Source: Phaeosaccion multiseriatum (taxonomy: Eukaryota > Protista > Ochrophyta, other classes). Taken from it: a DNA stretch of 64,000 nucleotides. The number at the start of each line of letters is the position of its first letter. Position 1 is the first letter of the stretch. Below, one piece after another: positions 3,201 to 52,002 of this stretch. The translations under genes were made by a program, and so were the position numbers. The notes under the pieces are model-generated. The model ran no database searches. It had not been told where the DNA came from and was given only the letters and a program-made list of their open reading frames with translations. The stretch spans positions 744,001-808,000 of the forward strand of contig OZ218956.1 of NCBI GenBank assembly GCA_965112735.1. Direction: 5' to 3'.

Positions 3201-3537
3201 CCAAGCGCAAGCTGGACGACTTTGCCGCAGGAGCTGCCGCCGCCGCTATGGACTCCGCAACCGACAGCTTCCTGTGCTCCCCCACCCTCATGTTCAGCAG
3301 CCCCGTGTGCAAGCGGCGGCGCACGCATAAGAAGGAGCACGCCAGCGACAAGTAAGTGACTAGGCAAGTCAAGTCAAGTGCTTTACTGATTTCCCCTGCT
3401 GGTCTGCTGCCTCTGTGCTGACGCCTGCTTGCTCTCCTGCCCTCAGGATGGTACTGGCCGATGGCGGTACCGATGAAGAGGCTGCTTCGAAACTGACAAT
3501 GGCGGGATTTTGCCGCGATAGCCCGCCCGCGCCATGA
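261..3537 (+). CDS. R1R2R3-type (3R) MYB transcription factor, about 7 exons
   Basis: Three tandem MYB repeats ([15 protein letters not shown]; [27 protein letters not shown]; [32 protein letters not shown]), followed by a Q-rich, S/TP-rich C-terminus. GT-AG introns at about 978-1046, 1195-1264, 2321-2430, 2787-2912, 2995-3110 and 3352-3446; TGA at 3535-3537. Confidence 0.9.
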
Positions 3538-3660
3538 ATCAACTTGTTATTTTTTTTAATTAATAATTAATCAAGTATCTAAGGGCCGTTCTTAAGAGCA
3601 AAGAAGCACAGCAATCACAGTAAATAAAGGAGCACAGCAAATTTTATCTAAATAGCTTTA

Positions 3661-5546
3661 CTACCATGTCTCGTCTGGCTTGGGGACCCCCTCGTCCACT
3701 GGCGTGAAGATCATATCTTCGGCCAGCGCCTTCAACCTCTCCACTTCCTCCGTGTGCACGGGAGTCCCGGAGGTAGGCACGTCGAACGATTCGAATGGCG
3801 AAAAGTCCATCATGAGCTCGTCGCTCCTCGGGTTCTTCATACTGTATACTGTTCGGTCCACGTCCGGAGAGATGGGGTTTCTCCTTGCCTCTGTCCCGAA
3901 GGGCTTGGGCAGCAGCCAGTGGAAGCTCATACCCACCTTCCGCCTTGTGCTGGACGGAACGTAACTGCCCTGCAGCTTGGCCAGCTCCAGCCGCTCGGAG
4001 GCGAAGTCCTGCATCTCCTTCTTGAGCTGCTCCCGCACGAAGGAGTGGCTCCAGGAAGCGTACTTGGACTTGAGGCCCCTGGCCACCTGGTGGAAGTACT
4101 TGTCTGCCTCGCTGATGGCGTCGTCCATCTCCTTCGCTACTGAGGGGGATATCCGAACGGTGGACAGCGACTTGCGGAACTTGTTCATGGCTGCTTTGCG
4201 CAGCTCTGTGATTTGGTCTCCGTGGGCCACCGTCAAGTCCCGCACGAGGGCTGCCGTGAGCGCTTTCCGCCTCGTCCTGACCGTCTTGGAGCGCCTGGCG
4301 GAGGCCGTCAGCTCGTCGAACTGCGCGAGCACGTCCTCAATGACGCTGTCGCTGTGCTCCCCAAACTCCTGGTCCAGCCCTTCGAAGGCCACACGCATAC
4401 CCTGTAGGAGACCGCGGAATGATTCCGAGCACTGCTCCGCGGCGGCCGAGGCCACGTATGCTCCCTTGAGCTCATTCTGTGTGCAATTGTGATTCATTGG
4501 GGGGGCGTTGCAGCGCATGAGCAACGTGGTGGGGGCACGACCAGAAGCGGGCAAAGCGAAGAAGCATCACACAACTCACCTCCGAGGCCCTCTCAGAGGC
4601 CTTACTGCCCCCGAGAGTCTTTGCCGCCTTCATTCTTCTGAGCACGTCTTGTCCTGTTGCGCCCGTCACCTCCCCGGCGAGGAGGGAGTTCTTTAGGGCA
4701 GCCACTTGCGAGGTCCAGGCCGACTCCGCCAGGCTGGGGTGCGGCAGGCACACCACGTCCACGTCAAACACCTGGTCCAGCGAAGCGTATTCGAAGGACG
4801 CTGGCTTCACAATGGAGTCCCACAGCGCCTTCAGCCCCTCCTTCACAGCGGTCTCCACCGCAGCGAGACTGTCCGGGTCCTGGTTCACGTCTCGGACTGC
4901 CACGACAAGCTTGCGCTGGAGAGGCGTATCACCCAGCTTGTTGGCAGCGTGCAGGACAAGGAGGCTCTCCATGGCGGGCTGGAGCCCCCCCAGCCCAGCT
5001 GCAGCACCACCTTCCCGACCCAAGTCCGGCATCAGCACATTGAAGATGACAACGTCCGACCCTGCCATGGCTGCACTCGCTGCCGTCGCCCCGTTGCTAA
5101 TGCCCCCCTCCTCGCCAGCAGACGATATCCCAGCCTGGGCCTCAATCAGTGCGACTCCCTCATCCACCCTTACTGCAGACGTATCACTTCCATACAGCGA
5201 TGACAATAGAGTGGACTTGCCACTCCGCCGACCTCCCTGCGAGTAAACAAGAGCAGGAAGGAGAAGAGGCAGGAAAGCAGCAGGAAGCAGCAGGAGCAGC
5301 AGGAGCAGGACGCAGCCTGATGAGATTCGCACGCTCCTTGCGTGTCGAATGGTGGGACGGCCCAGCACTCACCAGGCAGGACACCGTTCGCAACGTGGCG
5401 TCGCCGCTATCAGACAGCTGGGCTGCAAAGCTATGAGGGGATGTGGAGGCAAACGCAAGCTGCGCCTGCTGCTTTGCCGCAACCAAACATGGCACCAACG
5501 CCGCTGCTGCCACGAGGAACGGCAGCAGCCGCAGGGGGGGGCTCAT
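3661..5546 (-). CDS. RHD3/Sey1 (atlastin-like) GTPase-related protein with N-terminal signal peptide
   Basis: The spliced product (introns 5372-5237 and 4579-4477) reads MSPPLRLLPFLVAAAALVPCLVAA...TVSCL|GGRRSGKSTLLSSLYG (P-loop). It also has AMAGSDVVIFNVLMPDLGR, KLVVAVRD and LWDSIVKP..FDVDVVCLPH, which match RHD3/Sey1 blocks, followed by a helical stalk. Confidence 0.7.
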
Positions 5547-5681
5547 CACCAAGGCTAAGAGAATGGAACTGCCCTTTCCTGCTAAAAAAAAATGTGGTTC
5601 AGGGAGGGGAGGATGAATTTAAATTGAAACTTATAAATCGCGTTTCGATATTTCCACCCCCCCAAACTATAGGAGAGGACG

Positions 5682-7581
5682 ATGCCGGTTGGGCGGAGGA
5701 GGCCACGGTCCAACGATGGGGACAGGAGCTCGGACAGCGAGCGAGAGCAGGCGCGGCTTGAGGGGAGGAGACGATGGATGCGGATGTGTCGCACCACCGC
5801 GAAACGGCGGTGGCGGCAAATGGGGGTGACAGGAGTGGGTATGCTTCTGCTGGCTACGGCGCTGCTGTGCATCACGGCGTACCTGGAGAAGTGGCACACC
5901 AACTTGGACGGGTTGGGGGGGCACAGCAGCCCGAAGAATGATGCTCAAGAGGAGGATGATGATGCGCCGCTGTACTTTGCGGATAAGCTGGTCCCTGCGG
6001 CCTTTCGTGACTACGGTGCGATGCATAGCAGGACAATGGCCTCCTCGTCACTGGCGAAGCAGGCCAAGTATGTTCTCTACGACTTACCGGGAAAGACTTC
6101 TCTGTCGCACGCTCTCCTCGGACTGGTGAGTGCCCCCCTCCCCGCCCACTTCCGTGCTGCTACTGCTCGTGTTTTTGGCCAACCCCCTTCTTTCTTTCTC
6201 TGTCTCCTCTCCCCGTCCAGACCTCAACGTACTTGTTCGCTCTGATGAGTGGCCGTGTGCTTCTCGTACGCTGGTCTTCTTCGGACCAGAACATGCCCGC
6301 CGTGGGGGCGGGGAACAGTTCGCACGTGGGATTGTCGTCGGATGACGTCTTCGGCGCGAATGACGTGCTTGGTACCGGCGGCAGCGGCAGTGGAGAAGGC
6401 AGCAGCAGCAGCGGCGGCGGTGGGGGTGCTAGTGGCGATGAGGCAACTACGGTGGACGACTTGTTTCTCAGCCCAGGCTTTTCCTGGAAATGGTTTGACT
6501 TTGTCAACCATTGGACAGACGACTTTGGGCTGTCCGAGTCGCTCATCCAGCTGCATGACTTCGACGTGACGGGACTGTCCAGCGACTTGGTGTGTCGGCA
6601 ATTAGAAAGCCTTTCGGAGAACAAGCAGTTCATTCGAATTGTCAATGGGCAGCAGTACTTTGCGCCGCTGCTCTCCATCAACCCTTCGCCCCGAGCGATC
6701 TCAATCATGAACCAAATCCCGGAGGGCGATCTGTTTGCGTACCTCTGCAACTGGGTCCTTCGGCCTGTGCCCAGGTGAGAAGACGCTTTGGCTTTTCCTT
6801 TTGTCGCTTTCTGTACTAGACACAAACAGTGCAAACATTTGTCAACAATTTTATGTCCTTTTCCCTCTGAACAATGCGCAGCGTAATGACGGCTGTCCGG
6901 AACTTTCGCGAGCGCTACCTGCAGAGGAATTACGTCATTGGTATGGAGATTACACTGGAGAGCCCACTGAGCGAGTATGGCACCATGCCTGCCCCGCAGC
7001 AGGACATGTTCTTTGAAGAGGCGTCATCGGCCTCCTTCCGCGCTTTGGATGACCTGTCCGATAAGAGCGCAGGCGGGGGCGTTGTGATTCTGGTTGTGAC
7101 AGACGACGAGGCGGCGCTACGGCAGCGACTCAATTACATTCAGCAGGGTGGGGGGGAGGGTCTCGGTGCCGCAGGGGTGCTGGCCATCACGGGGCCCAAG
7201 GGCTTTGGCACCACCAAGCTGCTGACCGAACTGCAGATGATGTGGCTCTTGGGGGAGTCTGACATGTGCATCGTGTCCCCCGCCAGCGCAATGGGGGTCT
7301 TTGGCCACGCCAGAACGAGCAAGGCGCCCATCGTAGTGGTGGACGGTGCAAACGCTCACCAAAGCACGTCGTCGCAACCATGCCTTGCGCATATCGAGCG
7401 TGACGTGCAGGCCACTGCGTGCTACGACACCTCCATGCTCGACGTCATCTCCTTTGACCCGAGCGTCCCGTGTGTGTCTCCGGCGGCTGCAACAGCTACA
7501 GCAGCGCCAGCCGCAACAGCACCAGCGGGGAACGGCAGAGAGCTCCGTAGAAGCGTGCAATACGAGCAGCAGTTCATGTAG
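5682..7581 (+). CDS. Type II membrane fucosyltransferase-like protein (GT37/GT23-like fold)
   Basis: Basic tail plus one TM (GVGMLLLATALLCITAYL). Motifs SLSHALLGL|TSTYLFALMSGRVLLVRW, VIGMEIT, VILVVTDD and ELQMMWLLGESDMCIVSPASAMG resemble xyloglucan fucosyltransferase motifs. Introns at about 6126-6220 and 6775-6881. Confidence 0.6.
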
Positions 7582-10846: not shown

Positions 10847-12791
10847 ATGCTCCTTTTGGGGCTGCGGAGGTCGGGGGGGGCTGCTGCGGCAGCGGCTGCC
10901 AACAGCCTGCAGCGACTGGGTGCGCCGCTGCACACGAACCCATCAGCTATGAGAGTGGGGGGGGCTCGTGAGAAGGTGCTGGCCCGAATCCGCTCCGTTC
11001 AGGAGAAGAAGGGGTTCCAAACCATCAACAAGACTCCGCGGGACAGCGACATGCTTGTCGTGGGCTGCGGCATTGCCGGCGCGTCCGCTGCCCTCAAAGC
11101 CGCGAGCATGGGACTTCAGGTTACCATGCTTACTTCGGCGATGGATCCGCTGGACTGCAACAGCTACTGGGCGCAGGGCGGCATCATCTACAAGGCCAAG
11201 GACGACCACCCCAGCCTGTTAGCGGACGATGTGTGCACTGCCGGAGCCGGCATTTGCGACAGCGACGCCGTCATGAAGCTCGCTCTGGACGGGCCTGGTC
11301 GAGTAGAGGAGATGTTGCTGGGCATGGCAAAGGTGCGCGCATCCCTCTTTGCTCTCAGTGCACATACACACAAAAAGGATACACACATTTTCTCTAACTC
11401 CTTTAGACCCCTCCAAATCTTAGGTGCCCTTTGACCGCACCCCCGAGGGCGAGCTGGCCCTCTGCCTGGAGGCCAGCCACAACCGCGCGCGAATCATTCA
11501 CTGGAGAGACCAGACGGGAAGGGCCATTACGGAGTGCGTGCAGGCTGCGGCTGCCACGCACCCCAACATTCGCCTGGTGCGAGGGGCGACTGCGGTGGAC
11601 CTAGCCCTGGCGTACGGCGGGTCGGCAGCGGCGAGCAGAAGTGGTCCGAATGGCTACGGAGGTGTGCAGTGTGTCGGGGCCCATGTGCTGGTGCAGGAGG
11701 AGGAGGGCGCCAAGGCCCGACTGGAGACCATGCTGGCCAGCAGCACTGTGCTCGCCACGGGGGGGCTGGGCGACTTGTACGAGTACACGTCCAACCCCGC
11801 GAGTGCGCGCGGCGACGGCTTTGCAATGGCGCTCCGGGCAGGCGCCGCGCTGAGAAACATGGAGTATGTTCAGTTCCACCCGACCACTCTCCCCGTGGAG
11901 GGGGATCGCAGCTTTTTGCTCACCGAGGCCTTGCGTGGCGAAGGTGCGATCCTCAGAGACTCTGACGGACGAGCCTTTGCCAAGGATTACCACCCGCAGG
12001 GCGAACTGGCGCCAAGGGATGTGGTGAGCAGGATGATTGTGTCGGAGATGGACGCAAGGAGGGAGCCCTACATGTTCCTGGACATTTCCCACCGGGACGA
12101 GGATTGGATCCGACGTCGCTTTCCCGGGGTGTACAAACACGCCCTGGCTTGTGGATACGATATCACCGCCGGGCCCGTGCCCATTCAGCCCGCCGCACAC
12201 TACTTTTGCGGGGGCGTCATGACCGACCTTAGCGGACAGACCACCCTCCCGGGCCTGCTGGCGGCGGGGGAGGTGGCATGCACAGGTCTCCACGGAGGGA
12301 ATCGCCTGGCGTCCACTTCTTTGCTCGAAGGCGTGGTGTGGGGCTGCTCCTTGGCTGAGCACCTCACCAGCCCCGTGGAAAGCGGCACCAACGTTACCAA
12401 CCTGGAGGCCCTCAGCGCTTCCGCCGGCAATGCCTCTCTGATTCCCCACGACCACCGCGGTCTGGGCCTGCCCGATGCGGACCCCGAGGGCCTGGAGGCT
12501 GCGTGGAAGCTTCTTCGCCGCACTATGACGGACAAGGTGGGCGTGGTGCGTACTGAGCGGAGTCTGCGAGAGGCGCTGGAGACCCTGGACAAACTGCACG
12601 CGCAGGCCAAGGCCATCTACGGACAGACGAGGCTGTCTCCCCACACCTCGGCCCTAAGGAATGCCACGGACACAGCTGGGATGATTGCCCAGGCGGCCGC
12701 GGCAAACCCAGAGTCTGTGGGGACCCACTACCTTGAACCCGAGGAGGACGAGAGCTTTGGGGAGGAGGACGAATCAATGTTGGCGGCGTAG
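10847..12791 (+). CDS. nadB: L-aspartate oxidase (NAD de novo synthesis)
   Basis: FAD-binding VVGCGIAG, SYWAQGGI, EASHNRARIIH, VLATGG, QFHPT, LLTEALRGEG, ELAPRDVV, AAHYFCGG and GLHGGNRLASTSLLE; one intron at 11333-11423. Confidence 0.93.
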
Positions 12792-38413: not shown

Positions 38414-38730
38414 TCACGCCGGCGCAAACTCCTGACAAGTGCGCAAGACGACTAGAGCCATATCATAAAAACCTGAAACACTCACACGAAGAAGCTTTGG
38501 CTCTTTCGAAGCAAAAGTCACAACCAGGCAGTTGTCTTCGAGCACAGCGGTCCGCCTCATTCGTGTGGGCTGCAGCTCTCGGTCCACGCCGAGGCTTTCC
38601 CAAGCCAAGGTAGCCACTTGCTCGGAAGGACAGCTGACACGAAGCACGCTGGGGTTTAGAGGATACATTAGAACACGGCACTGCTTTCCGCCAAGTGAGT
38701 TTACAGGGACTTTGCTTACCAACTGTACAT
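38414..38730 (-). CDS. PCC1: KEOPS complex subunit Pcc1/LAGE3
   Basis: MYS|CVLRVSCPSEQVATLAWESLGVDREL.P....R......L.V.F......LLRVSVSGFYD; intron at about 38719-38649. Confidence 0.85.
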
Positions 38731-38814
38731 GTCCTTCTTCTGTTTATAAAAATGAGAGTGTCTACATTTAGTGGATGGCAGTGGAGGGCCAAAAGTGCTT
38801 TACTTTCCCCCCCC

Positions 38815-39023
38815 CCCCTGAACACTATACCCTACAATGCGTGTGTACGTCAGCCGGCCTTGACTTGGTGCCGAACGGCCTGCCAACCCCCCCCCCCCCC
38901 CCCCCCCCACCGGCGCCAGCACCAGGGCGCGCTACAGCGGCCGAAGCGTGCTATCAGACCCGCGTGGGCCCGACAGCATGCTATCGAGAATGCGTCGATG
39001 ACACACACACACACAGGGGTCGA
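38815..39023. mobile_element. Degenerate MITE (TCGACCC family) in the Pcc1/AAA intergenic region
   Basis: GTCAGCCGGCCTTGACTTG..CCGAACGGCCTGCCAACCCCC matches the reverse complement of 27403-27451; ends CAGGGGTCGAA. Confidence 0.65.
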
Positions 39024-39030
39024 AGATTGT

Positions 39031-41193
39031 ATGACTGCCGCCCTTAGATGTTACCCTGTCGTCGACGAGGTTAGCGGGTGCTGCTGGTCTAGTCAGCCTC
39101 TCGATGTCCTCTTGCCTACGGCGTTTTTCGCAGCCTCGGCAGGAGGAGGAGCGGCAGATCGTCCAAAGAGCGGCGGCCATGTGGGCATTACGCTGGCGGG
39201 GAGGCGAGTCCTTCTCGTGGCAGTGGCGGTGTCGCACCTTGCCGCCGACGAAGTGCAGCTGCATGGCTGGGTGCTTGACTTCTTCGCGCTTTCTCCAGGG
39301 GACCTCCTCCCTGTCGCGGCAATCAGCGCAATCTCTGTACTGCAGCCTGAGCAGCAGCAACAGCAGCAGCAGCAGCAGCCTGGAGGACTGAAGTTGGAAG
39401 TGCTGCTGCTGTCATCCGTTCCAGTGGCGCTGACGCACTCATTGGTGAGGATCATGAGACGAAGGCTACTGCACTGTGTCGTCGCGCAGGGCTGCGTGGT
39501 CGCGTTTGGTGCCTTTGGGTCGCTGGTGAGGGCTTACATCGACAAGAGCTCGTGGGGGACCGCACTGTGCAGAGTCTCTAAGCAGACACAGTTGGTGGTT
39601 GGGGTTGCTACTACATCACCTCCTGCAGCTCCTGGTGCAAGCGGAGCTTGCGCGCTCGTGGGCCGAGAGCGGGAGCTGTCCGAGCTCAGGAGATGTGCTT
39701 TGATGGCACTTCTCCCCACAGAGGTGCCTCGCGGAGCCCTGGTCTGCGGCCCCCCAGGAGTGGGGAAGACAGCGCTTGTCCTCCAATTGCAGAGGGTGCT
39801 TGGGGGTAAGGTACGATTTGTTCGCCTGCGGGTGGGCCTGGCGACTGTGTGGGCGCCGCCAGCAGCAGCAGCAGCAGGAAACGAAATCTTATACATTGTG
39901 CTGATCGAAGAGGCTGATTTGCAGCAGCGGGAGAATCCCACGGCGCTGATCCGAGCGCTCGGGGCTGTGGAGAATGCCATCGCTGCTGCAGGGTGCAAAT
40001 GCTTTTTCATTGGGGAAGCAAGGTCTTCTTTGTCGATGGGGGAAAATGCGGTGTTGTTTGGGCCCGGCGGCTTTCTGGAAACGAGGCTGGAGCTAACTGA
40101 AGCGCCGAGCGAGAGTGACCGGCTGGCGATGGCGCATCGCCTTGCGGAAAGAATGCGCATCCCAGTACAAGCAGGCTTGGCGCGCCGTCTTTCGCAAGAG
40201 ACTCCCGGGTATTTGGGTGGTGACTTGCAGCTGATCCTCAAAATGGCGTTCACGCAAACCCGTTTGCGGGCTCATCGTGATGGGTCTCCTCCACAACTGC
40301 AGTGGAGAGACGCGACTGTGGCCTTGCGAAACGTGCTGCCAACCTCTCTTGATGGCCTTGTAGATGACCGCTTCGTGCAAAACCTGTCTTGGCAGTCTGT
40401 TGCGGGGTACGATGAGGTGAAGCGCCGGCTGCAGTACCTGATCCAGTGGCCGTGGCTGCATCCCGAGGCGTTCCAGCGCATGGGCTTCTCCAAGGGGGGT
40501 CTGCCGGGCGTGATTCTGGCGGGGCCCAGCGGATGCGGAAAGAGCCTCATCGCCAGTGTGCTGGCCAACGAGTGCAGAGCAACCTTCATCAGGGTGCGCT
40601 GCAGCGAAATCATGTCGCGATTTCTGGGTGGGGCAGAGTCCAAGGTGAGACAGCTCTTTGAGAGAGCAAGACGAGCCGCGCCCTGCATTCTCTTTTTTGA
40701 CGAGCTGGACTCCATCACGCAGGCAAGGGGGGGCAGTGGCAATTCTGTTCTAGACCGAGTGCTGAGTACTCTACTCAACGAAATAGACGGCATTGACGCG
40801 TCTTGCCACGGAAAGGGCGTGTTGGTGTTGGCGGCCACCAACCGCATCGATGCCATCGACTCCGCCCTCTTACGGCCTGGTCGTCTGGAGCAAGTTGTGC
40901 TGGTCCCCCGCCCCTCACACAGAGATCGATGCGCCATCTTCGAGCTGCATACCCAACGGCACCACGTGCCGCTCGCCCCCAATGTCGACCTAGAGGAGCT
41001 AGCTGGTGAGCTCTACTGCCCTCCTGGGGCTGGCGGGGCAGACATTGCCGGTGTGTGTAGAGAGGCAGGCATGTGCGCTCTTCGGGAGGATTCGGATGCG
41101 CAAACCTTGGACAGGCGCCACTTTGTTCAAGCAATCGCACAGAGGTGGCCCAGAGCAAATGGCAACACCATGATAAATTCTATTGTACCGTAA
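39031..41193 (+). CDS. CDC48-family double AAA+ ATPase (AFG2/SPATA5L1-like)
   Basis: D1 has GPPGVGKT with a degenerate Walker B (VLIEEAD). D2 has GPSGCGKS, FFDELD and AATNRIDAIDSALLRPGRL. Intronless; start taken at ATG 39031, downstream of the MITE. Confidence 0.8.
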   Translation: MTAALRCYPVVDEVSGCCWSSQPLDVLLPTAFFAASAGGGAADRPKSGGHVGITLAGRRVLLVAVAVSHLAADEVQLHGWVLDFFALSPGDLLPVAAISAISVLQPEQQQQQQQQQPGGLKLEVLLLSSVPVALTHSLVRIMRRRLLHCVVAQGCVVAFGAFGSLVRAYIDKSSWGTALCRVSKQTQLVVGVATTSPPAAPGASGACALVGRERELSELRRCALMALLPTEVPRGALVCGPPGVGKTALVLQLQRVLGGKVRFVRLRVGLATVWAPPAAAAAGNEILYIVLIEEADLQQRENPTALIRALGAVENAIAAAGCKCFFIGEARSSLSMGENAVLFGPGGFLETRLELTEAPSESDRLAMAHRLAERMRIPVQAGLARRLSQETPGYLGGDLQLILKMAFTQTRLRAHRDGSPPQLQWRDATVALRNVLPTSLDGLVDDRFVQNLSWQSVAGYDEVKRRLQYLIQWPWLHPEAFQRMGFSKGGLPGVILAGPSGCGKSLIASVLANECRATFIRVRCSEIMSRFLGGAESKVRQLFERARRAAPCILFFDELDSITQARGGSGNSVLDRVLSTLLNEIDGIDASCHGKGVLVLAATNRIDAIDSALLRPGRLEQVVLVPRPSHRDRCAIFELHTQRHHVPLAPNVDLEELAGELYCPPGAGGADIAGVCREAGMCALREDSDAQTLDRRHFVQAIAQRWPRANGNTMINSIVP

Positions 41194-41239: not shown

Positions 41240-44200
41240 CTACTTGTTGGCCGCGTGTCGATGTCCCTTGAGAGCCGCCAGTCGCTGTTTGAGGGCGTTG
41301 GTGTCCGTGGAGGCCGCTGCTCCGGAGGGGAGGACCCCGACAGCGCGCCTGTCGACGACGTTGGTCTTAAAGGCCAGCGGCTCCACGGGGCTAGGCTTTC
41401 CTTGAGCCGCCTGCGCCAGTCTCTCCTTGATGCTCTGCACCGTCTTGACAGATTGGTTGGGCCGCTCATTCTCACAGCCGGCCCGGGGGGGGGCCTTTGC
41501 CAAATCCTCAGCCGCTTTTCTGTCTCTTTGCTCCATTTCAGTGACAATGAAAGTCTGAAAAGCAGGACTGAGATGCTCCAGATACGGAGCGAGGACAAAG
41601 CCTGGGGGCAGGGTCTGGAGGTAAGCATGTAGCGCCGGCATGTCTTTGGCCTTGACGAGTCGCGCGAGCTCCTCCTCCCAATTCTCCAAAAACATGCCCT
41701 GCTGAACAGCAGGCTCTGGCAAGGCGGGCCTCCGCAGAACGCAAGTCATTGGTAGGGCCGCCGCATCTAGACTTGCTTGCACCCTCTCGGGCGGAACGGT
41801 GTCTTGTACTTTCTGCCACACTCTACCAACGCAGTTTGTGATTCGACCTTGCAGCCCGCCGTCGCTTCCAGCAGCCGCGGTAGCAGCAGCAGACGCTACA
41901 TACTCATAGTACGTGTTCAGAGCCCTGACTAGCTCCACAAGCTGCGGCTGCTGTTGACCGTCCGCCATGTCCCTAGCCGGCGACCGCCACAAAGGGCGCT
42001 CCGAGACGCGAGCCAACAGCTTGAGGTAAATTTTGAGCGTCTGTGAAACACGTACACACACACACACAACCACACACAAGTGAGCGGAAACAATGACTCA
42101 GCGCAGAGCAAAAGGACAATAGACGATACCTTGGTATCCCGGTGGGTACTTCCCAATAGGCGGATGAGGGCGCCCTGCCCCACTGCTGCAGGCACGCAGT
42201 CTATGGTGGAGACGGCCAACTTGTTGAGGGCCTTAGTGATTTGCGGTAGAACCTCCTGATACCCCTCGAATGTCGTACGATTCTCGTGCACAAGCCGATC
42301 ATCCGTGAGCTTCCCGCAGACCGCCTGTAAGAGACGAAGCACACTCTCCACATCCATGCCCACCGCAACTTGGCGAACAACCACCATCAATGTCGCCAGC
42401 GCCTTGGTGATGAGACACAGGTCCATGCCCCCAGCCACATCCATTGCGTCTTTGGGGGATGAGCACACAAAGGCAAAGTCCACACAGTCTGAGAGGGTGC
42501 CCACAAGGGAGGGTGCTTGACTTGCCCGCAGCTTTCCACTGTCCGCCACACTATACAGCTCCTGAATCTCCTTCGACGCTGCGCTGTAGCAAGGCTCCGT
42601 CGCGTCAATAGGGTGCGGTAGTCGCAGCAAGGTCGCCAAGCTGGTCAGTAGGTCCGCTTCTCCAAAGCCCCCCCCCCCCGCCAAGTCCTCCTCCTTGAAC
42701 TGAAAGAGGTCTTCCGCGTCCGCGCACGACGCATTCGACACCTGGTCCGAGGCGGTCTCTGACAGGGAGGAAGAGTCCAAACGCAAGTGGTCGAGGTCTG
42801 CACTGTACTCCACGCCTCGCGCCACGGCAGCCACGGGAGCCGCGGGAGGAGGTGCCTTGCTTGGTTCAAACGCAATCGTCGGGAGAGGTGCAACAGTTGC
42901 CCCGCCAGTAGCGGGTTCGGCGCTCTTTGGCTTTCGCTCTCTGCCCAAGGCCTTGAGTCGCTCGTCAATCAGCGCCTTGGCCTTGTCCGGTAAAGGGCCA
43001 AGCATCTTGTAGAGCTTGCCGCTGTTGTTGTCCACCTGGGCGTAAAGAGCCTGAATGGAGCACAGCGCAGCGTTGCGCACGTCTGCCTCCCTGGCATCCA
43101 CCTGCTTGGAGAGCTCGCGAATACCCTTCTTGCTCACAACGCCGGCCCCACTCTGGCCGACGACTCGTGCCACCTGTATTCCATACATGAATGTCAGGTA
43201 CCAAAGGGGATAACATCACACAAATGACCTTTCACTCACCTCCTCGAGGCACGCCGTCTTGGTCCTGCTATTCTTGGAGCTGACGGCGACCAGCAGCATC
43301 GCCACGTACTTTTGCGTAGAGTACAGCCGACTGGCGAGGACCATGACCCTCCGAAATGCCACTCGAAACCGCTCCTTCCCCTGGCCGCTCTTCTCCAGGA
43401 CCGTGGGTAATAGCACGTCTGCCTCGTAGTCCGTCAGCGAGTAGCCCGTCTCGAGCAGCTGCGTTGGGGTTTGGTGGGGATTTTCGCACACGACAATACA
43501 AAAGAGTAGGTTGGAGATGTGCAGCCAAACGAGAGAGAAAAAACAAAACAAAAACTTCCAATGCCGTCCGCACGTACCATCTGTAGCGTCGCCTCGATGA
43601 CGGACATCAAGCGCTGCTGAGCTTGCACGTTTTCTTTCTCGCATAGAAAGAGAGAGAACCACTTGAACACTAAGTCCAGATTGTCCACAAAGGCACTGGA
43701 GCACGTGGTGAGGGCGTCTTGTAGAACCTCCAGCCCAGGCATTGCCCCTTCCATGCCGCTCGTCTTTGGCGGGAAAAGCTTCCCCACCACGCTGGCTGAG
43801 CCCAGATAAGGCGTGAATTGAGCCCGCAGCGCCTCCATCTGCCCGGTCCGCGGCTCATCAGACGACACAAACCACCTCTGCCGTTTGTCCTGCTCTTGCC
43901 GCTTCGTCTTGGAGCTGTTCCTCTGCATCGAACTACTGCTACTTCCAGCCTTGGGGGGCAAGGCCTGGGCCACCACCTCCTCCTCTTCAGGTCTTGCGGA
44001 GACTGGTGGGATCTTGGGACCTTTCCGGGCAAGCGTGGCGACCCGCGCGGCCGGTAAATTGGTAGGTGCCGCGTTCGCTGCTGGTACCGCACCTTCCTCC
44101 TCCTCTGCCACTGCTGCTGCTGTGTTCGCCTTGCCAGCGGCGCAGATGCGCTTTATAGCCGGCTCCATCTGCCTCTTGACGGCGGCTGCAAAGTCTCGAC

Positions 44201-47200
44201 TCTCCTCCCTCACCTTGTCTGCGGATACGTGACCGTTCCCCACAAAAAAGGCTAGACATTCCTCTGCCGTCTGGCGAACGGCAGCACTCTTGTCTTGCAT
44301 GCACGCTAGCAGCGGGGACACTTGAGCAGCAGCAGCTTGCTCCACAGCACCACCGCCGCTTGGGTTCCCAAACACAGCAGGAAAATGTCTCAGCTGCCAG
44401 AGGAGAAGGTCGTGCCTGCCCACCACATTAGCAAGAGCTGCCGACAAAAACGGCAGCAAGGCTTCCACCGTGGGTGCGTGAGTGGAGTCCCCTTCTCCAA
44501 CACAAACAATACTGTCCAAAGCGCTGAGTGCCGCGTCTCGCATGGACTTTTTGTTGTCCGCGACGCAGGCCAACAACTGCTCCGCATAGACTCTCCCAAC
44601 CTTCGGTGAAGCCTCCACCCCAACACTTCTCGACACTTGGGCGATGGCTTGCGCTGCCAAGGGCTTCAGGTTGGATTGGGAGTCTTGCAGCCTTGCACGA
44701 AGGGCCTTCAGCACTTCCACAACAGCTTTGTTGGGCTCAATGTAGTGGCCACTTTTCTCGCACGCCTTCACCACTTCTTCTAAGGCAGACTTGCGTCCTT
44801 TCCAAGCCGCCTTTCCACTCACGTTTCCCATCTGCTCTATGCAATCCTTCAAGGACAGGAGAGCGCTCAAGTCGGACCGAGGTAGAGCGGCCCCCCCCCC
44901 CCCCTCACCACCACCAGACTTTGCCGCACCAGAGCCTCCACCTCGCGACGACCGAACTGGCTTGAACGAGGACGAATCGAATCCAACCCTCCCGAATTCT
45001 ACGTCCAGCTGAGTCTTGAGAGCGGGCTTAATCGAGTCAGGTAGCATGCCCTTCACCGCCGGTCCGGCCTGGTGAAAGATTTGGCCCAAGAGCCCCACCG
45101 CAGAGGCCCGGATTTTGACATTGCCATCATCCAACTCTTTCACGCCAAACTCCGTCACGCGGGGAATAGAGAGTGCATGACCACCAAACTCAGTAACGCT
45201 CTGCTGAAGCCAAGCAAGTGCCGCTTCGTGCAGGGCCGGAACCTTGCTTCCCGCTGCCCCAGCCATGACCATTTTGGCACACACTGCTGGAGTGGTGGCC
45301 TCTGACGCTGCTGTCAACAGCCCACCTACGCAGTCCTTCAGCTTCCTATCGCCCAGCTTCTCCACCGCCGGACGCAACACAGCCCTTAAGGCTGCTTGGC
45401 TGATCTCGGCTCCCTCCTCCCCAAACGCATCCATACACGTTTTGACGGCCTCAAAGGCAGCCTTCAGCACGTTGAAGTTGGAGTCTTTAAAGCCCTTTGT
45501 ATGATCCTGGAGAACGACAATGAGAGGGGAGAAATACTTTTTAAAGTCCCTTGAGGCCGCCGCTGCCTTCCCCAGACCCTCCAAGGCCTCCCTGCGTTCC
45601 TGCCACTTGGCACTTGTTAGATTGGGAAGCAGAGCGTCGACTCCTTCCATCTCCCGAATGATATCCAGCGCCTCCTCTGAGCTCGGTAGGGCTTCCTCGC
45701 CGCTACTGTCTGAAGGTGTGGTGGTGGTCGACGAGGTATCCTTTGGCCTCCTGGTCCTCAAAGAGCTTGTCGCTTTCGTTGAAACTGAAGGACCCACAGG
45801 CCTTTTTGAAGGTCGCTTTTGAGACGCTGCAGCAGTCCCTTGCGTTGGTGCGACCCCTGAAACTTTCCCCTCCAAGACACCACCACCACCGCCGCCGCCG
45901 CCGCCACCACCACCACCACCACCGCCACCACCACTTGCACTTGCACCACCACCACGCAGTGCTCCCTGGATTCTCGTAAATATCTTCTCCTGCGATGGTC
46001 GAAGTCCTTCCACAAGAGTCCACACTGCTCCTCCTTTCCCCCCTCCCTCCAGCCGCTTTGCGGCACTAATCAAGGCAAGTATCGTGGCCATTGCCGCCGC
46101 ACGAACAGCAGGATCATTGTCTCGTAAAGACGAGAGTACAGCCTCTGTGCACTGGACGTAGGACTCGAGCTGCTGAGGGAACTCCGGGGAAGGGGTCGAC
46201 ACGCATCGTCCCAGCCACTCCATCACAGCGACCCGGGAATGTGCAGCCTTTTTGGCGTCAAGTGCCGCAACAATCTCCGGGACGATCACTTCTAGTGGCA
46301 GCGACGACCTAAAAACAGAGTCCAGATGATCGGCCAAAGGCTTCACGCACTTCTTGTCCTTCAGCTTTGAAATCATCGCCGCAGCAACTCCCTTCGCGTG
46401 GGGCGAGAATCCCTTTCGCAGACCCTCTGCGAGCAAACCCAAGAGCTTGAATGCAGTTAGCGCCACCTGCACATGCGAATGGTCGCCCAGCGCCTTGCAG
46501 GTTTTGACGAGATCGCTGTAGTTGCCCGGCATCAGCTTCGGCACTCCACCGATAATGTCAATGGCCTCCTGCAACCCCCCAACCTTTTCGCTCCACTTGG
46601 CTTCGCTTAATTTGGCGTGAAAGTCCGATTTCGGCAGCCTGGCCAACAAGTTCACCTGCAGTTGTCATTGATACAGTAGTCGGTATGAAGAAAAAGACAA
46701 AACCGAAGGCCTCCTCTCCTCCCCAAGCCCCATCTTACCGGCTCCACGAAATCTCTGGGATCAAACGCAGGTCCTCCCTCTTGGTTAGAGTCAGCCCTCT
46801 CAGACACAGTCATCGTCCCCGCAGTACCGGTCTTTGGCCTGCGGTGATGGGCGCAAGCAAGGGGTGGTGAGGTATACACTAAACCTCGGCGCCCCCAAAG
46901 GCCTGCTCCTACTTTCGGCGTACCTGTCCTTTCGAAGATAGACCGTGGGCGTCATCCTGCCAGTAGGCGTTTCGAGGGCCATCTTCTCGGCAATGGTAGT
47001 CTGCGTCGCCTTCTTTAGCCCCTCCAGCGCTGGCTTGAGTGGCTCTTCCCCCACCCACTTTTTCATATCCACCAGCAGGTCCACGGCAGCGGCCCGCACG
47101 GCCACATTCCTATCCTCGAGTATGGCAGGCATCTCACCAAGCAAGTCCCGCACAGGCATGGCGGGCACACCGAAGGAAGCGAGTGCCTGGCGAAGGCACT

Positions 47201-50604: not shown

Positions 50605-52002
50605 ATGTCGAACCTTTCTATTTCTGAAGTCTACCGGCAGAGCGGAGGACTGGTGCAGTGGAGTCCGGACTGCAGGCACCTGGCCTGCTCCCTCGGTGCC
50701 CGTCTTGTCGTACGGGATGCAAATACCTTTCAGGTGGCCGGAGACGGGCCGAAGGCTTGCCAGGACAAGATCGAGGCCATTGAGTGGGCGGCGGACTCTG
50801 ACTTGATCCTCTGCGCATCGTACAAGTCCTCCATCGTCGAAGTATTCTCTCTGTCCCAGCCGGATTGGCGCTGCCGTATTCGAGAAGGCGTGGCAGGGTT
50901 AGTGAAGGCAACTTTCGCGCCGGATGCCCGGCATCTGTTGACGTTCTCCGACTTTTCGCTGCACTTGAATGTCTGGTCCCTCATCACAAAGGAGGCGTTT
51001 TATGTGAAGCAGCCAAAAGCACCTCCCGGCTCAGTGTGTTTTAGTCCCAATGGAGACTACATGGCGATTGCAAGTCGGCTGGACTGCAAGGACCGGGTCG
51101 CTATTTATGATTGCTCGCAAGAGTGGGCTTGCATCAACGAGTTTCCGGTGGACACGCTGGATTTGACTGGTATAACCTGGTCACCCGATGGCGACTCCAT
51201 CTGCGTGCAAGATACGTCCCTGGAGTACGTTGCCCTGTTCTACGCCGTGGACGGCAGCCTTTTGTCCCGTTTTCAGCCTTACAACAACGCCTTGGGAATC
51301 AAGGCCTCTTCGTGGTCACCGGACGGCGCGTTTCTCGCCATTGGGAGCTACGATGAGAGCCTTCGGCTTCTGGCCTGTCTGGATTGGAAGTCCGTTGCTG
51401 AGCTGCGCCACGTCCATCCCAAGCAGCAGAATCGAAGCTGCTCTCCTCCGTCGATTTACTCCGAGTGTTTAGAAAAGCCACAGGATCCAGAGGAGGCAAT
51501 CGGGGCCTTGAGAGCGGGCGCAACCCTAAAGTGCTTTGGGGAGCGCGACCCAATGGCTTCTTCGTTGGAGGAGGACGTGTACTTTTCCTCTCATGACCTA
51601 CCGGCAGTCTTGCCCAACGAGCGGCCGGACATGCTCAAGTCTAGTCCACGCCTAGGTGTAGGGGTGATAGCCTGGAGCCACGATGGCCGCTACATCGCCT
51701 CGCGCAATGATAACATGGCTGGCACGCTGTGGATATGGGACGCCAGGGTCATGGGCTTGGCTGCAATTGTCCAATTCAGGGACAGCGTTCGGTCATTTAA
51801 ATGGTCCAGCACTAGCACCACGCTGGCAGTTTCCACGGGCAACTCGCGCATTTACTTTTGGAACCCTCGGGGCATGTCGTGGGCGGCCGTTGCAGCAGAC
51901 TTTCAAGTGCTCGGGCTTCGGTGGAGAGCGGACGGCGATGCGCTTTTACTGCTCAGCAAAGACAGAATGTGCCGAGTCTCATTCTCCGCCGGGAATGACT
52001 AA
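50605..52002 (+). CDS. WRAP73: WD-repeat protein WRAP73/WDR8 (centriolar)
   Basis: RLVVRDANTFQ, CQDKIEAIEWAADSDLILCA.YK, W.CRIREGVAGL, LGIK...WSP.G.FLAIGSYD and YIASRNDNM..TLWIWD. Confidence 0.9.
   Translation: MSNLSISEVYRQSGGLVQWSPDCRHLACSLGARLVVRDANTFQVAGDGPKACQDKIEAIEWAADSDLILCASYKSSIVEVFSLSQPDWRCRIREGVAGLVKATFAPDARHLLTFSDFSLHLNVWSLITKEAFYVKQPKAPPGSVCFSPNGDYMAIASRLDCKDRVAIYDCSQEWACINEFPVDTLDLTGITWSPDGDSICVQDTSLEYVALFYAVDGSLLSRFQPYNNALGIKASSWSPDGAFLAIGSYDESLRLLACLDWKSVAELRHVHPKQQNRSCSPPSIYSECLEKPQDPEEAIGALRAGATLKCFGERDPMASSLEEDVYFSSHDLPAVLPNERPDMLKSSPRLGVGVIAWSHDGRYIASRNDNMAGTLWIWDARVMGLAAIVQFRDSVRSFKWSSTSTTLAVSTGNSRIYFWNPRGMSWAAVAADFQVLGLRWRADGDALLLLSKDRMCRVSFSAGND

Follow-up and report, generated by a model that had tools for sequence, protein, structure and literature searches.

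A Sey1/RHD3-like protein with an N-terminal leader and without a C-terminal membrane hairpin, probably periplastidal, in the ochrophyte Phaeosaccion multiseriatum

A three-exon gene and its product

The window considered here is a stretch of 64,000 nucleotides from the ochrophyte Phaeosaccion multiseriatum (assembly GCA_965112735.1, contig OZ218956.1, positions 744,001 to 808,000 of the forward strand). Near its beginning, on the minus strand from 5546 to 3661, lies a three-exon gene for a protein of ~548 amino acids, which belongs to the RHD3/Sey1 family of GTPases, carries a hydrophobic N-terminal leader, and lacks the C-terminal transmembrane (TM) hairpin of the canonical members. The protein is probably a factor of the periplastidal compartment, as argued below. 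Splice sites and exons were read from the genomic sequence, and motifs were assigned by alignment with RHD3/Sey1 and the orthologues; the features of the gene are as follows (window coordinates).

5546-5544, minus strand: start codon ATG
5373-5546, minus strand: exon 1 (58 amino acids by translation), with the leader, a transit-peptide-like stretch, and the beta-1 strand preceding the P-loop
5475-5534, minus strand: hydrophobic core of the leader, residues 5-24, mean Kyte-Doolittle hydropathy 2.2 over 19 residues
5412-5474, minus strand: acid-free stretch rich in A, S and Q, residues 25-45 (five A, four Q and four S, plus K and H); the first acidic residue is D46
5237-5372, minus strand: intron 1 (136 nucleotides, GTGAGT...CAG), which holds a GCAGCAGGAGCAGG-type low-complexity repeat
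4580-5236, minus strand: exon 2 (219 amino acids), the RHD3/Sey1-type G domain
5213-5236, minus strand: G1, the P-loop GGRRSGKS, intact; exon 2 opens with its codons
5129-5146, minus strand: degenerate G3, I-E-A-Q-A-G, where the canonical sequence is L-D-V-E-G-T (D-x-E-G)
4889-4903, minus strand: RD (G4-type) motif V-A-V-R-D, retained
4477-4579, minus strand: intron 2 (103 nucleotides, GTGAGT...CAG)
3661-4476, minus strand: exon 3 (271 amino acids and the TAG), a short Sey1-type helical stalk followed by a conserved non-helical C-terminal module
3895-3996, minus strand: sub-family signature E-R-L-E-L-A-K-L-Q-G ... F-H-W-L-L-P-K-P-F-G, from an alignment of 15 orthologues, red algae included
3706-3720, minus strand: near-C-terminal M-[VI]-[FY] motif, common to the orthologues in alignments and marking the true C-terminus
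3663-3661, minus strand: stop codon TAG

The junction of exons 1 and 2 (V-S-C-L / G-G-R-R-S-G-K-S) is spaced like V-S-C-I-G-S-Q-G-T-G-K-T of Tribonema and others, and at the intron 2 junction, exons 2 and 3 are colinear with homologues of unspliced length. On the 5′ side, a divergent gene has its ATG at 5682, leaving a spacer of 135 bp to the start codon; on the 3′ side, the stop of a convergent gene ends at 3537, leaving ~123 bp (3538-3660). Because these close neighbors bound the gene at both ends, hidden terminal exons are unlikely. The earlier note on this DNA had allowed for a different first exon without the leader, which is at odds with the divergent gene only 135 bp away and with the recurrence of the leader in orthologues.

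Repeats of the GCAGCAGGAGCAGG / GGCAGCAGC type, which are common to many unrelated genomic contigs, occur at 5281-5310 (inside intron 1) and at 6392-6428, and produce peaks of depth and spurious joints (5308 to 6399) in the contig data. These joints were considered as introns and rejected, as they fall in low-complexity GCAGCAG repeats. A start codon within intron 1 was rejected as well: the frame of exon 2 is open through most of this intron (5237-5368, minus strand), where it encodes a leucine-rich hydrophobic run, and it contains no ATG there. The open hydrophobic frame is probably a chance product of the CTG/CTC repeat.

Exon 2 matched the Pfam family RHD3_GTPase (PF05879) with an E-value of 6.4e-20 and 72 bits (cut-off 42.4), its residues 51-190 aligning with profile positions 72-206. 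In a sequence search of the PDB, the sole match was Candida Sey1p (7.5e-5). This alignment lays the P-loop on residues 65-82 and resumes at Sey1p residue 140, opposite query residue 50; in the region of switch I and of the strands that precede G3 (that is, between G1 and the strand after G3), the window protein has ~26 residues fewer than Sey1p. When exon 2 was modeled with AlphaFold from a 17-row alignment (predicted local distance difference test score, pLDDT, 82; predicted template modeling score, pTM, 0.81), Foldseek returned Sey1p (5ca8) as the best fold match (1.5e-8, probability 1.0), followed by RNF112, the atlastins and the GBPs. The RHD3 assignment, already made in the earlier note from the letters alone, is well beyond chance, both by sequence and by fold; a search of NCBIfam with the gene product gave no match.

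Exon 3 matched the Pfam family Sey1_3HB (PF20428) with 5.3e-8, covering only profile positions 2-133 of 419. Its model comprises five helices at residues 2-169 (pLDDT >90), followed by a tail of low confidence, and could be laid on the Sey1p stalk 5ca9 with 3.8 A over 177 columns (probability 0.99). In that Foldseek search all E-values were above 0.1, and Sey1p alone superposed well; a sequence search of the PDB with exon 3 gave no match. Scanning exon 3 for a hydrophobic segment revealed none (top hydropathy over 19 residues, 0.57), and the C-termini of the homologues, likewise without TM segments, are colinear with the window protein to the last residues. Because the homologues end at the same place, the absence of the hairpin is not a truncation of the gene model. 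A missing 3′ exon encoding TM segments, which the earlier note had also envisaged, was rejected on this ground and in view of the mere ~123 bp to the convergent stop.

Like canonical Sey1p/RHD3 (5ca8, 5ca9), the window protein has a G domain of the same fold with a P-loop and an RD motif, and its stalk corresponds to the beginning of the three-helix bundle. It differs by the absence of a C-terminal TM hairpin or tail, by a stalk of about one third of the Sey1 profile, by the degenerate G3, by the ~26 residues missing around switch I, and by the added N-terminal leader. A canonical RHD3/Sey1 fusogen of the endoplasmic reticulum (ER) was, thus, rejected: the motifs are incomplete, the helical stalk amounts to ~170 residues, TM segments are absent, and a leader is present.

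Sub-family membership and paralogues

A HMMER search with exon 2, in a library without the window's own protein, gave 113 matches, the best of which were 37-48% identical to exon 2. The top group consists of proteins of 515-560 amino acids with a leader, a G domain from about residue 40-50 onward, a short stalk and a hydrophilic C-terminus. Its named ochrophyte members are from Tribonema minus, Chrysoparadoxa australica, Choristocarpus tenellus and Phaeothamnion confervicola; red-algal members, without a leader, are from Cyanidium caldarium, Porphyra umbilicalis and Gracilaria changii. All named members of the sub-family are, thus, rhodophytes or ochrophytes.

Exon 3 delimits this sub-family sharply. 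Against members with the HWLLP module it scored between 1e-57 and 1e-15 (Cyanidium, 1.6e-26; Gracilaria, 5e-30; the Porphyra cluster, 8e-24), as opposed to 5.6e-8 or worse against other paralogues. In a quick maximum-likelihood tree of the G domain, which has several long branches and moderate support, the window protein grouped with the leader-bearing members (Shimodaira-Hasegawa-like approximate likelihood-ratio test, SH-aLRT, 81), and a branch with SH-aLRT 90 separated the sub-family from the other paralogues (including members P0014 and P0060) and from the canonical TM-bearing Sey1/RHD3 proteins.

The sub-family shares the pattern R-L-Q-L-A-K-L-Q-G, then R-x-P-V-G-x-x-F-H-W-L-L-P-x-P-F-G-x-D-A. 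Among 15 orthologues, E161, R162, L163, A166, G170, H186, L188, P192, F193 and G194 are invariant or nearly invariant columns. The mean column identity of the C-terminal half is 36% versus 29% for the G domain, with six versus no invariant and 12 versus two nearly invariant columns. Judging from this distribution, the stalk and the C-terminal module are the probable seat of the conserved function.

The nucleotide motifs, in contrast, have decayed repeatedly across the sub-family. G1 is intact in the window protein, Tribonema, Choristocarpus, P0002, P0011 and Cyanidium, but lost in P0006, P0115, Porphyra (G-S-G-G-S), Gracilaria and three further members. G3 reads D-V-D-G or D-V-E-G in Cyanidium and Porphyra, versus [LIM]-E-[AV]-x-[SA] in the window protein and its close ochrophyte relatives. 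The switch-I segment Q-T-T-K-G-I-W of canonical RHD3/Sey1 is shortened or missing in the window protein, and these relatives are likewise without it. The RD motif is retained in nearly all members. Because the canonical Asp and Gly of G3 and part of switch I are lost, although fold, P-loop and RD motif are kept, the G domain of the window protein would at best bind nucleotides, with hydrolysis either impaired or non-canonical. The earlier note had read the P-loop as intact and G3 as degenerate, which the alignments bear out, and its idea of a pseudo-GTPase is reasonable for the whole paralogue line, given the better conservation of the C-terminal half.

TM-less relatives of Sey1 have been described before. 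PTF1-3 of Cyanidioschyzon merolae (CMI311C, CMD101C and CMQ054C) are Sey1/RHD3-like, have no TM segments and bind transit peptides, and their C-termini resemble PPP1 (Baek 2022, PMC9407449). PPP1 is essential for apicoplast import and probably periplastidal (Sheiner 2011, PMC3228799). The nucleomorph ORF261, ORF532a and ORF534 are homologous to Sey1, and ORF261, the counterpart of CMD101C, has been linked to plastid division (Zauner 2019, PMC6559170); their homologues in Phaeodactylum are periplastidal as judged by GFP fusions (Moog 2011, PMC3101018). A 2025 phylogeny of the symbiont-specific ERAD-like machinery (SELMA) places three Sey1-like paralogues of red-algal origin in the nuclear genomes of CASH lineages (cryptophytes, alveolates, stramenopiles and haptophytes; Molecular Biology and Evolution, 2025, PMC12412216).

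Three C-terminal types of TM-less proteins were also found here, and they fit the three published Sey1-like paralogues. Besides the type of the window protein, a second type ends ...F-D-I-D-L (in C. merolae, Galdieria and Compsopogon, and, with a leader, in brown algae), and a third has a very Q-rich C-terminus. The window protein is neither of the latter two: it lacks the F-D-I-D-L ending, and the C. merolae AP006499 member and its leader-bearing brown-algal orthologues lie on other branches. Against P0014 and P0060, which would be of the PPP1 type judging from their Q-rich C-termini, exon 3 scored only 2e-7 and 6e-8. The F-D-I-D-L-type protein of C. merolae (638 amino acids) is encoded at 119493-122409 of AP006499.2, ~120 kb into a record of 1.23 Mb, which we take, from the accession series, to be chromosome 17; it fits CMQ054C, that is, PTF3. 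This protein has an acidic insert of ~60 residues between G3 and the next helix, which the other members lack. The sub-family, as far as its sequences tell, is a paralogue of both PPP1 and PTF3. Because the F-D-I-D-L type fits PTF3 and PTF1 is described as notably Q-rich, it is probably, by elimination, the PTF2 (CMD101C)/nucleomorph ORF261 type.

The window protein resembles PTF1-3 in its N-terminal Sey1/RHD3-like G domain and short stalk, in having no TM segments, and in a conserved C-terminal block in which glutamines are conserved as well. PTF1-3, however, are cytosolic and have no leader, whereas the window protein has one resembling a signal peptide, and Baek et al. report a typical GTP-binding motif, whereas G3 of the window protein reads E-x-x-A and its switch I is shortened. 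With PPP1 (Toxoplasma TGME49 087270; Thalassiosira 267353), for which a periplastidal location is shown or likely and which has a role in plastid import and a C-terminal glutamine patch, it shares the superfamily and the red-lineage distribution. PPP1 is nevertheless the other paralogue, by the scores of exon 3 (5.6e-8 at best for the Q-rich type versus 1e-15 to 1e-57 within the sub-family), and diatom PPP1 is reported to lack a GTP-binding domain, whereas the window protein keeps its G domain. The Phaeodactylum proteins sORF261, sORF532a and sORF534 are nucleus-encoded with a bipartite signal, an architecture to which that of the window protein can be likened by description; it is likewise by description only that one of the Guillardia proteins ORF261, ORF532a and ORF534, Sey1 homologues of the periplastidal compartment, may be called its orthologue.

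The best match from the Cyanidiales, P0158, came from a metagenome-type assembly and not from strain 10D. Word-index protein searches yielded little, probably because alanine-rich words swamped the 8000 candidates that were considered: the exon-2 query gave no match within its length window, and a seven-sequence profile and Cyanidium P0120 gave three proteins each. As leads, the ESM Atlas offered a Rhodophyta cluster and a Bacillariophyta cluster. The latter (140 'hypothetical proteins' of ~544 amino acids with hardly any Pfam signal) lies near the orthologue P0021; Sey1_3HB is kept in 14% and no G-domain family is listed as common, a hint of further decay of this line in diatoms.

Leader, probable location and role

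An N-terminal hydrophobic leader was found in all complete members of the sub-family that are not red-algal, and in none of the red-algal ones. In the window protein, the hydrophobic core (residues 5-24) and the stretch that follows it are as the earlier note had described them; residues 25-45 may be the transit-peptide-like part of a bipartite signal. The −3/−1 rule for signal peptide cleavage is satisfied after residues 23, 24, 33, 35 and 41, with A, K, S, S and A, respectively, at +1; none of these five sites has F, W, Y or L there. The most textbook-like site would be V-A-A|K, with P at −6, and comparable sites exist in orthologues (A-A-A|R, A-A-A|K and L-L-A|T). According to the diatom '+1 aromatic' rule, said to go back to Gould in 2006 and Gruber in 2007, a non-aromatic residue at +1 reportedly retains the protein in the periplastidal compartment. 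The rule is also mentioned in connection with PPP1 (Sheiner 2011, PMC3228799). A cleavage site and a periplastidal location of the product can, thus, be predicted from the leader.

A destination further inward, the intermembrane space or the stroma, would follow if cleavage occurred before F32, giving an aromatic +1. The sequence Q-L-A|F-A-S-T-S-P does resemble the ochrophyte motif A-S-A|F-A-P, and F or L after a small residue recurs near the end of the leader in orthologues (A-T-A-S-F in P0006; M-A-F-A-G-G in Choristocarpus). Such import is nonetheless improbable: Q at −3 violates the −3/−1 rule, all five conforming sites have A, K or S at +1, and the F/L position in the orthologues coincides, in the alignment, with the beginning of the mature fold. 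Moreover, the family has its ancestral home in the cytosol of red algae, and the diatom homologues are periplastidal (PMC9407449, PMC3101018).

If only the signal peptide counted, the product would be ER-lumenal or secreted, a Sey1 derivative without any role in the plastid, and the ~20 residues between the leader and the start of conserved sequence are indeed few. We regard this as quite unlikely, as the named members are confined to red algae and algae with red plastids, the post-leader stretch has no acidic residues and abounds in A, S and Q, as do transit-peptide-like regions, and the published localizations in diatoms are periplastidal (PMC3101018).

With its 20-residue core and mean hydropathy of 2.2, the leader might instead remain uncleaved and replace the C-terminal hairpin as a signal anchor, so that the protein, tethered to the chloroplast-ER or the periplastidal membrane, would still remodel or tether membranes, as in the membrane-remodeling idea of the earlier note; structures resembling vesicles have been discussed for the periplastidal compartment (Zauner 2019, PMC6559170). 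Prolines at positions 9 and 19 and the V-A-A|K site are, however, typical of cleaved signal peptides, and the leaders of the orthologues measure only 15-18 residues. A fusogen could also hardly tolerate a degenerate G3 and switch I, with the P-loop lost in several orthologues, and of the Sey1 profile, the stalk retains only about a third. A signal anchor, therefore, has little to recommend it.

The gene is probably the ochrophyte nuclear copy of a red-algal, TM-less Sey1/RHD3-like protein of the PTF/PPP1 family, its product being periplastidal and engaged in preprotein targeting or hand-over. In the red-algal ancestor, the protein would have been cytosolic and have worked at the plastid surface. 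After secondary endosymbiosis, its gene would have moved to the host nucleus and acquired a signal peptide and a short transit-peptide-like stretch, and because of this gain, the product could be sent back to the periplastidal compartment, which corresponds to the former red-algal cytosol. There, it would most likely act at the third plastid membrane, either in soluble form or peripherally attached. The foremost candidate role is to target preproteins or to hand them over to a channel of the Omp85/Toc75 type. As an alternative, a role in plastid division is favored for the ORF261/CMD101C type by Zauner et al.

The earlier note had thought of a lumenal, periplastidal or plastid-directed protein; a secretory or plastid route of a complex-plastid alga stands, and among these destinations the periplastidal one appears most likely. 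Its suggestion of membrane remodeling is less supported, as published data on the family favor preprotein targeting and import, with plastid division as the alternative. Nor is the architecture without precedent: TM-less Sey1-like proteins have been described in red algae and all red-plastid lineages, with diatom copies localized in 2011 and transit-peptide binding reported in 2022. The protein is a further member of a described, understudied family.

Several points weigh against this assignment. The functional data on the family stem from transit-peptide binding by C. merolae PTF1 and PTF3 and from import in Toxoplasma (PPP1) only. The equation with PTF2/ORF261 was made by elimination, CMD101C, ORF261 and sORF261 having been compared by description and not by alignment, and several of the leader-bearing members are metagenome or Logan records without an assigned taxon. 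Both the cleavage site and the decision between periplastid and stroma rest on the −3/−1 rule and the diatom '+1 aromatic' rule, and F32 in Q-L-A|F-A-S resembles the stromal ASAFAP motif. Finally, the public runs covering the stretch are four runs of one sample, consisting of DNA contigs of the source genome only; these match the window identically and run straight through both introns, and leave the splice model and expression as predictions. The nature of these runs and the degenerate nucleotide motifs could also be taken to signify a decaying or mis-modeled gene without function. That is very hard to believe of a gene whose reading frame runs uninterrupted through three exons joined at consensus splice sites, whose C-terminal half retains every invariant and nearly invariant column, and whose parts are modeled with confidence (stalk pLDDT >90; G domain pTM 0.81).

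Sey1-like PTF/PPP1 proteins are the chief candidates in the question of how proteins pass the third membrane of complex plastids of red descent, and of what substitutes there for the Toc34/159 receptors. With this locus, they gain a well-defined ochrophyte member in which the G domain persists. It has apparently not been stated before that one of the three paralogue lines can do without the nucleotide motifs, whereas its C-terminal module hardly varies from Cyanidium to the relatives of brown algae. Because the nucleotide motifs were repeatedly lost while the stalk and the H-W-L-L-P-x-P-F-G module are nearly invariant, the sub-family might, tentatively, be a nucleotide-independent adaptor. It would then be the long-sought receptor or chaperone for transit peptides at the Omp85/Toc75 channel, on its periplastidal side, in place of the Toc34/Toc159 GTPases that red-lineage plastids lack. 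The pattern of conservation points experimenters to the C-terminal module as the first part to mutate.

Surroundings in the window

The divergent neighbor (5682-7581, plus strand) is a multi-exon gene, the first exon of which encodes a basic N-terminus and then a single hydrophobic segment resembling a type-II anchor; a Pfam search with its three large open reading frame (ORF) pieces gave no match. Between the convergent stops, the spacer at 3538-3660 is AT-rich and contains a T8-AATTAATAATTAAT stretch, a candidate for a shared 3′-end signal in this very compact genome. Four other large ORFs of the window are ordinary housekeeping context:

11424-12791, plus strand: piece of a succinate-dehydrogenase/fumarate-reductase flavoprotein
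38695-41193, plus strand: double-AAA ATPase
43434-46655, minus strand: TOG/CLASP-like HEAT-repeat protein
50605-52002, plus strand: WD40 protein

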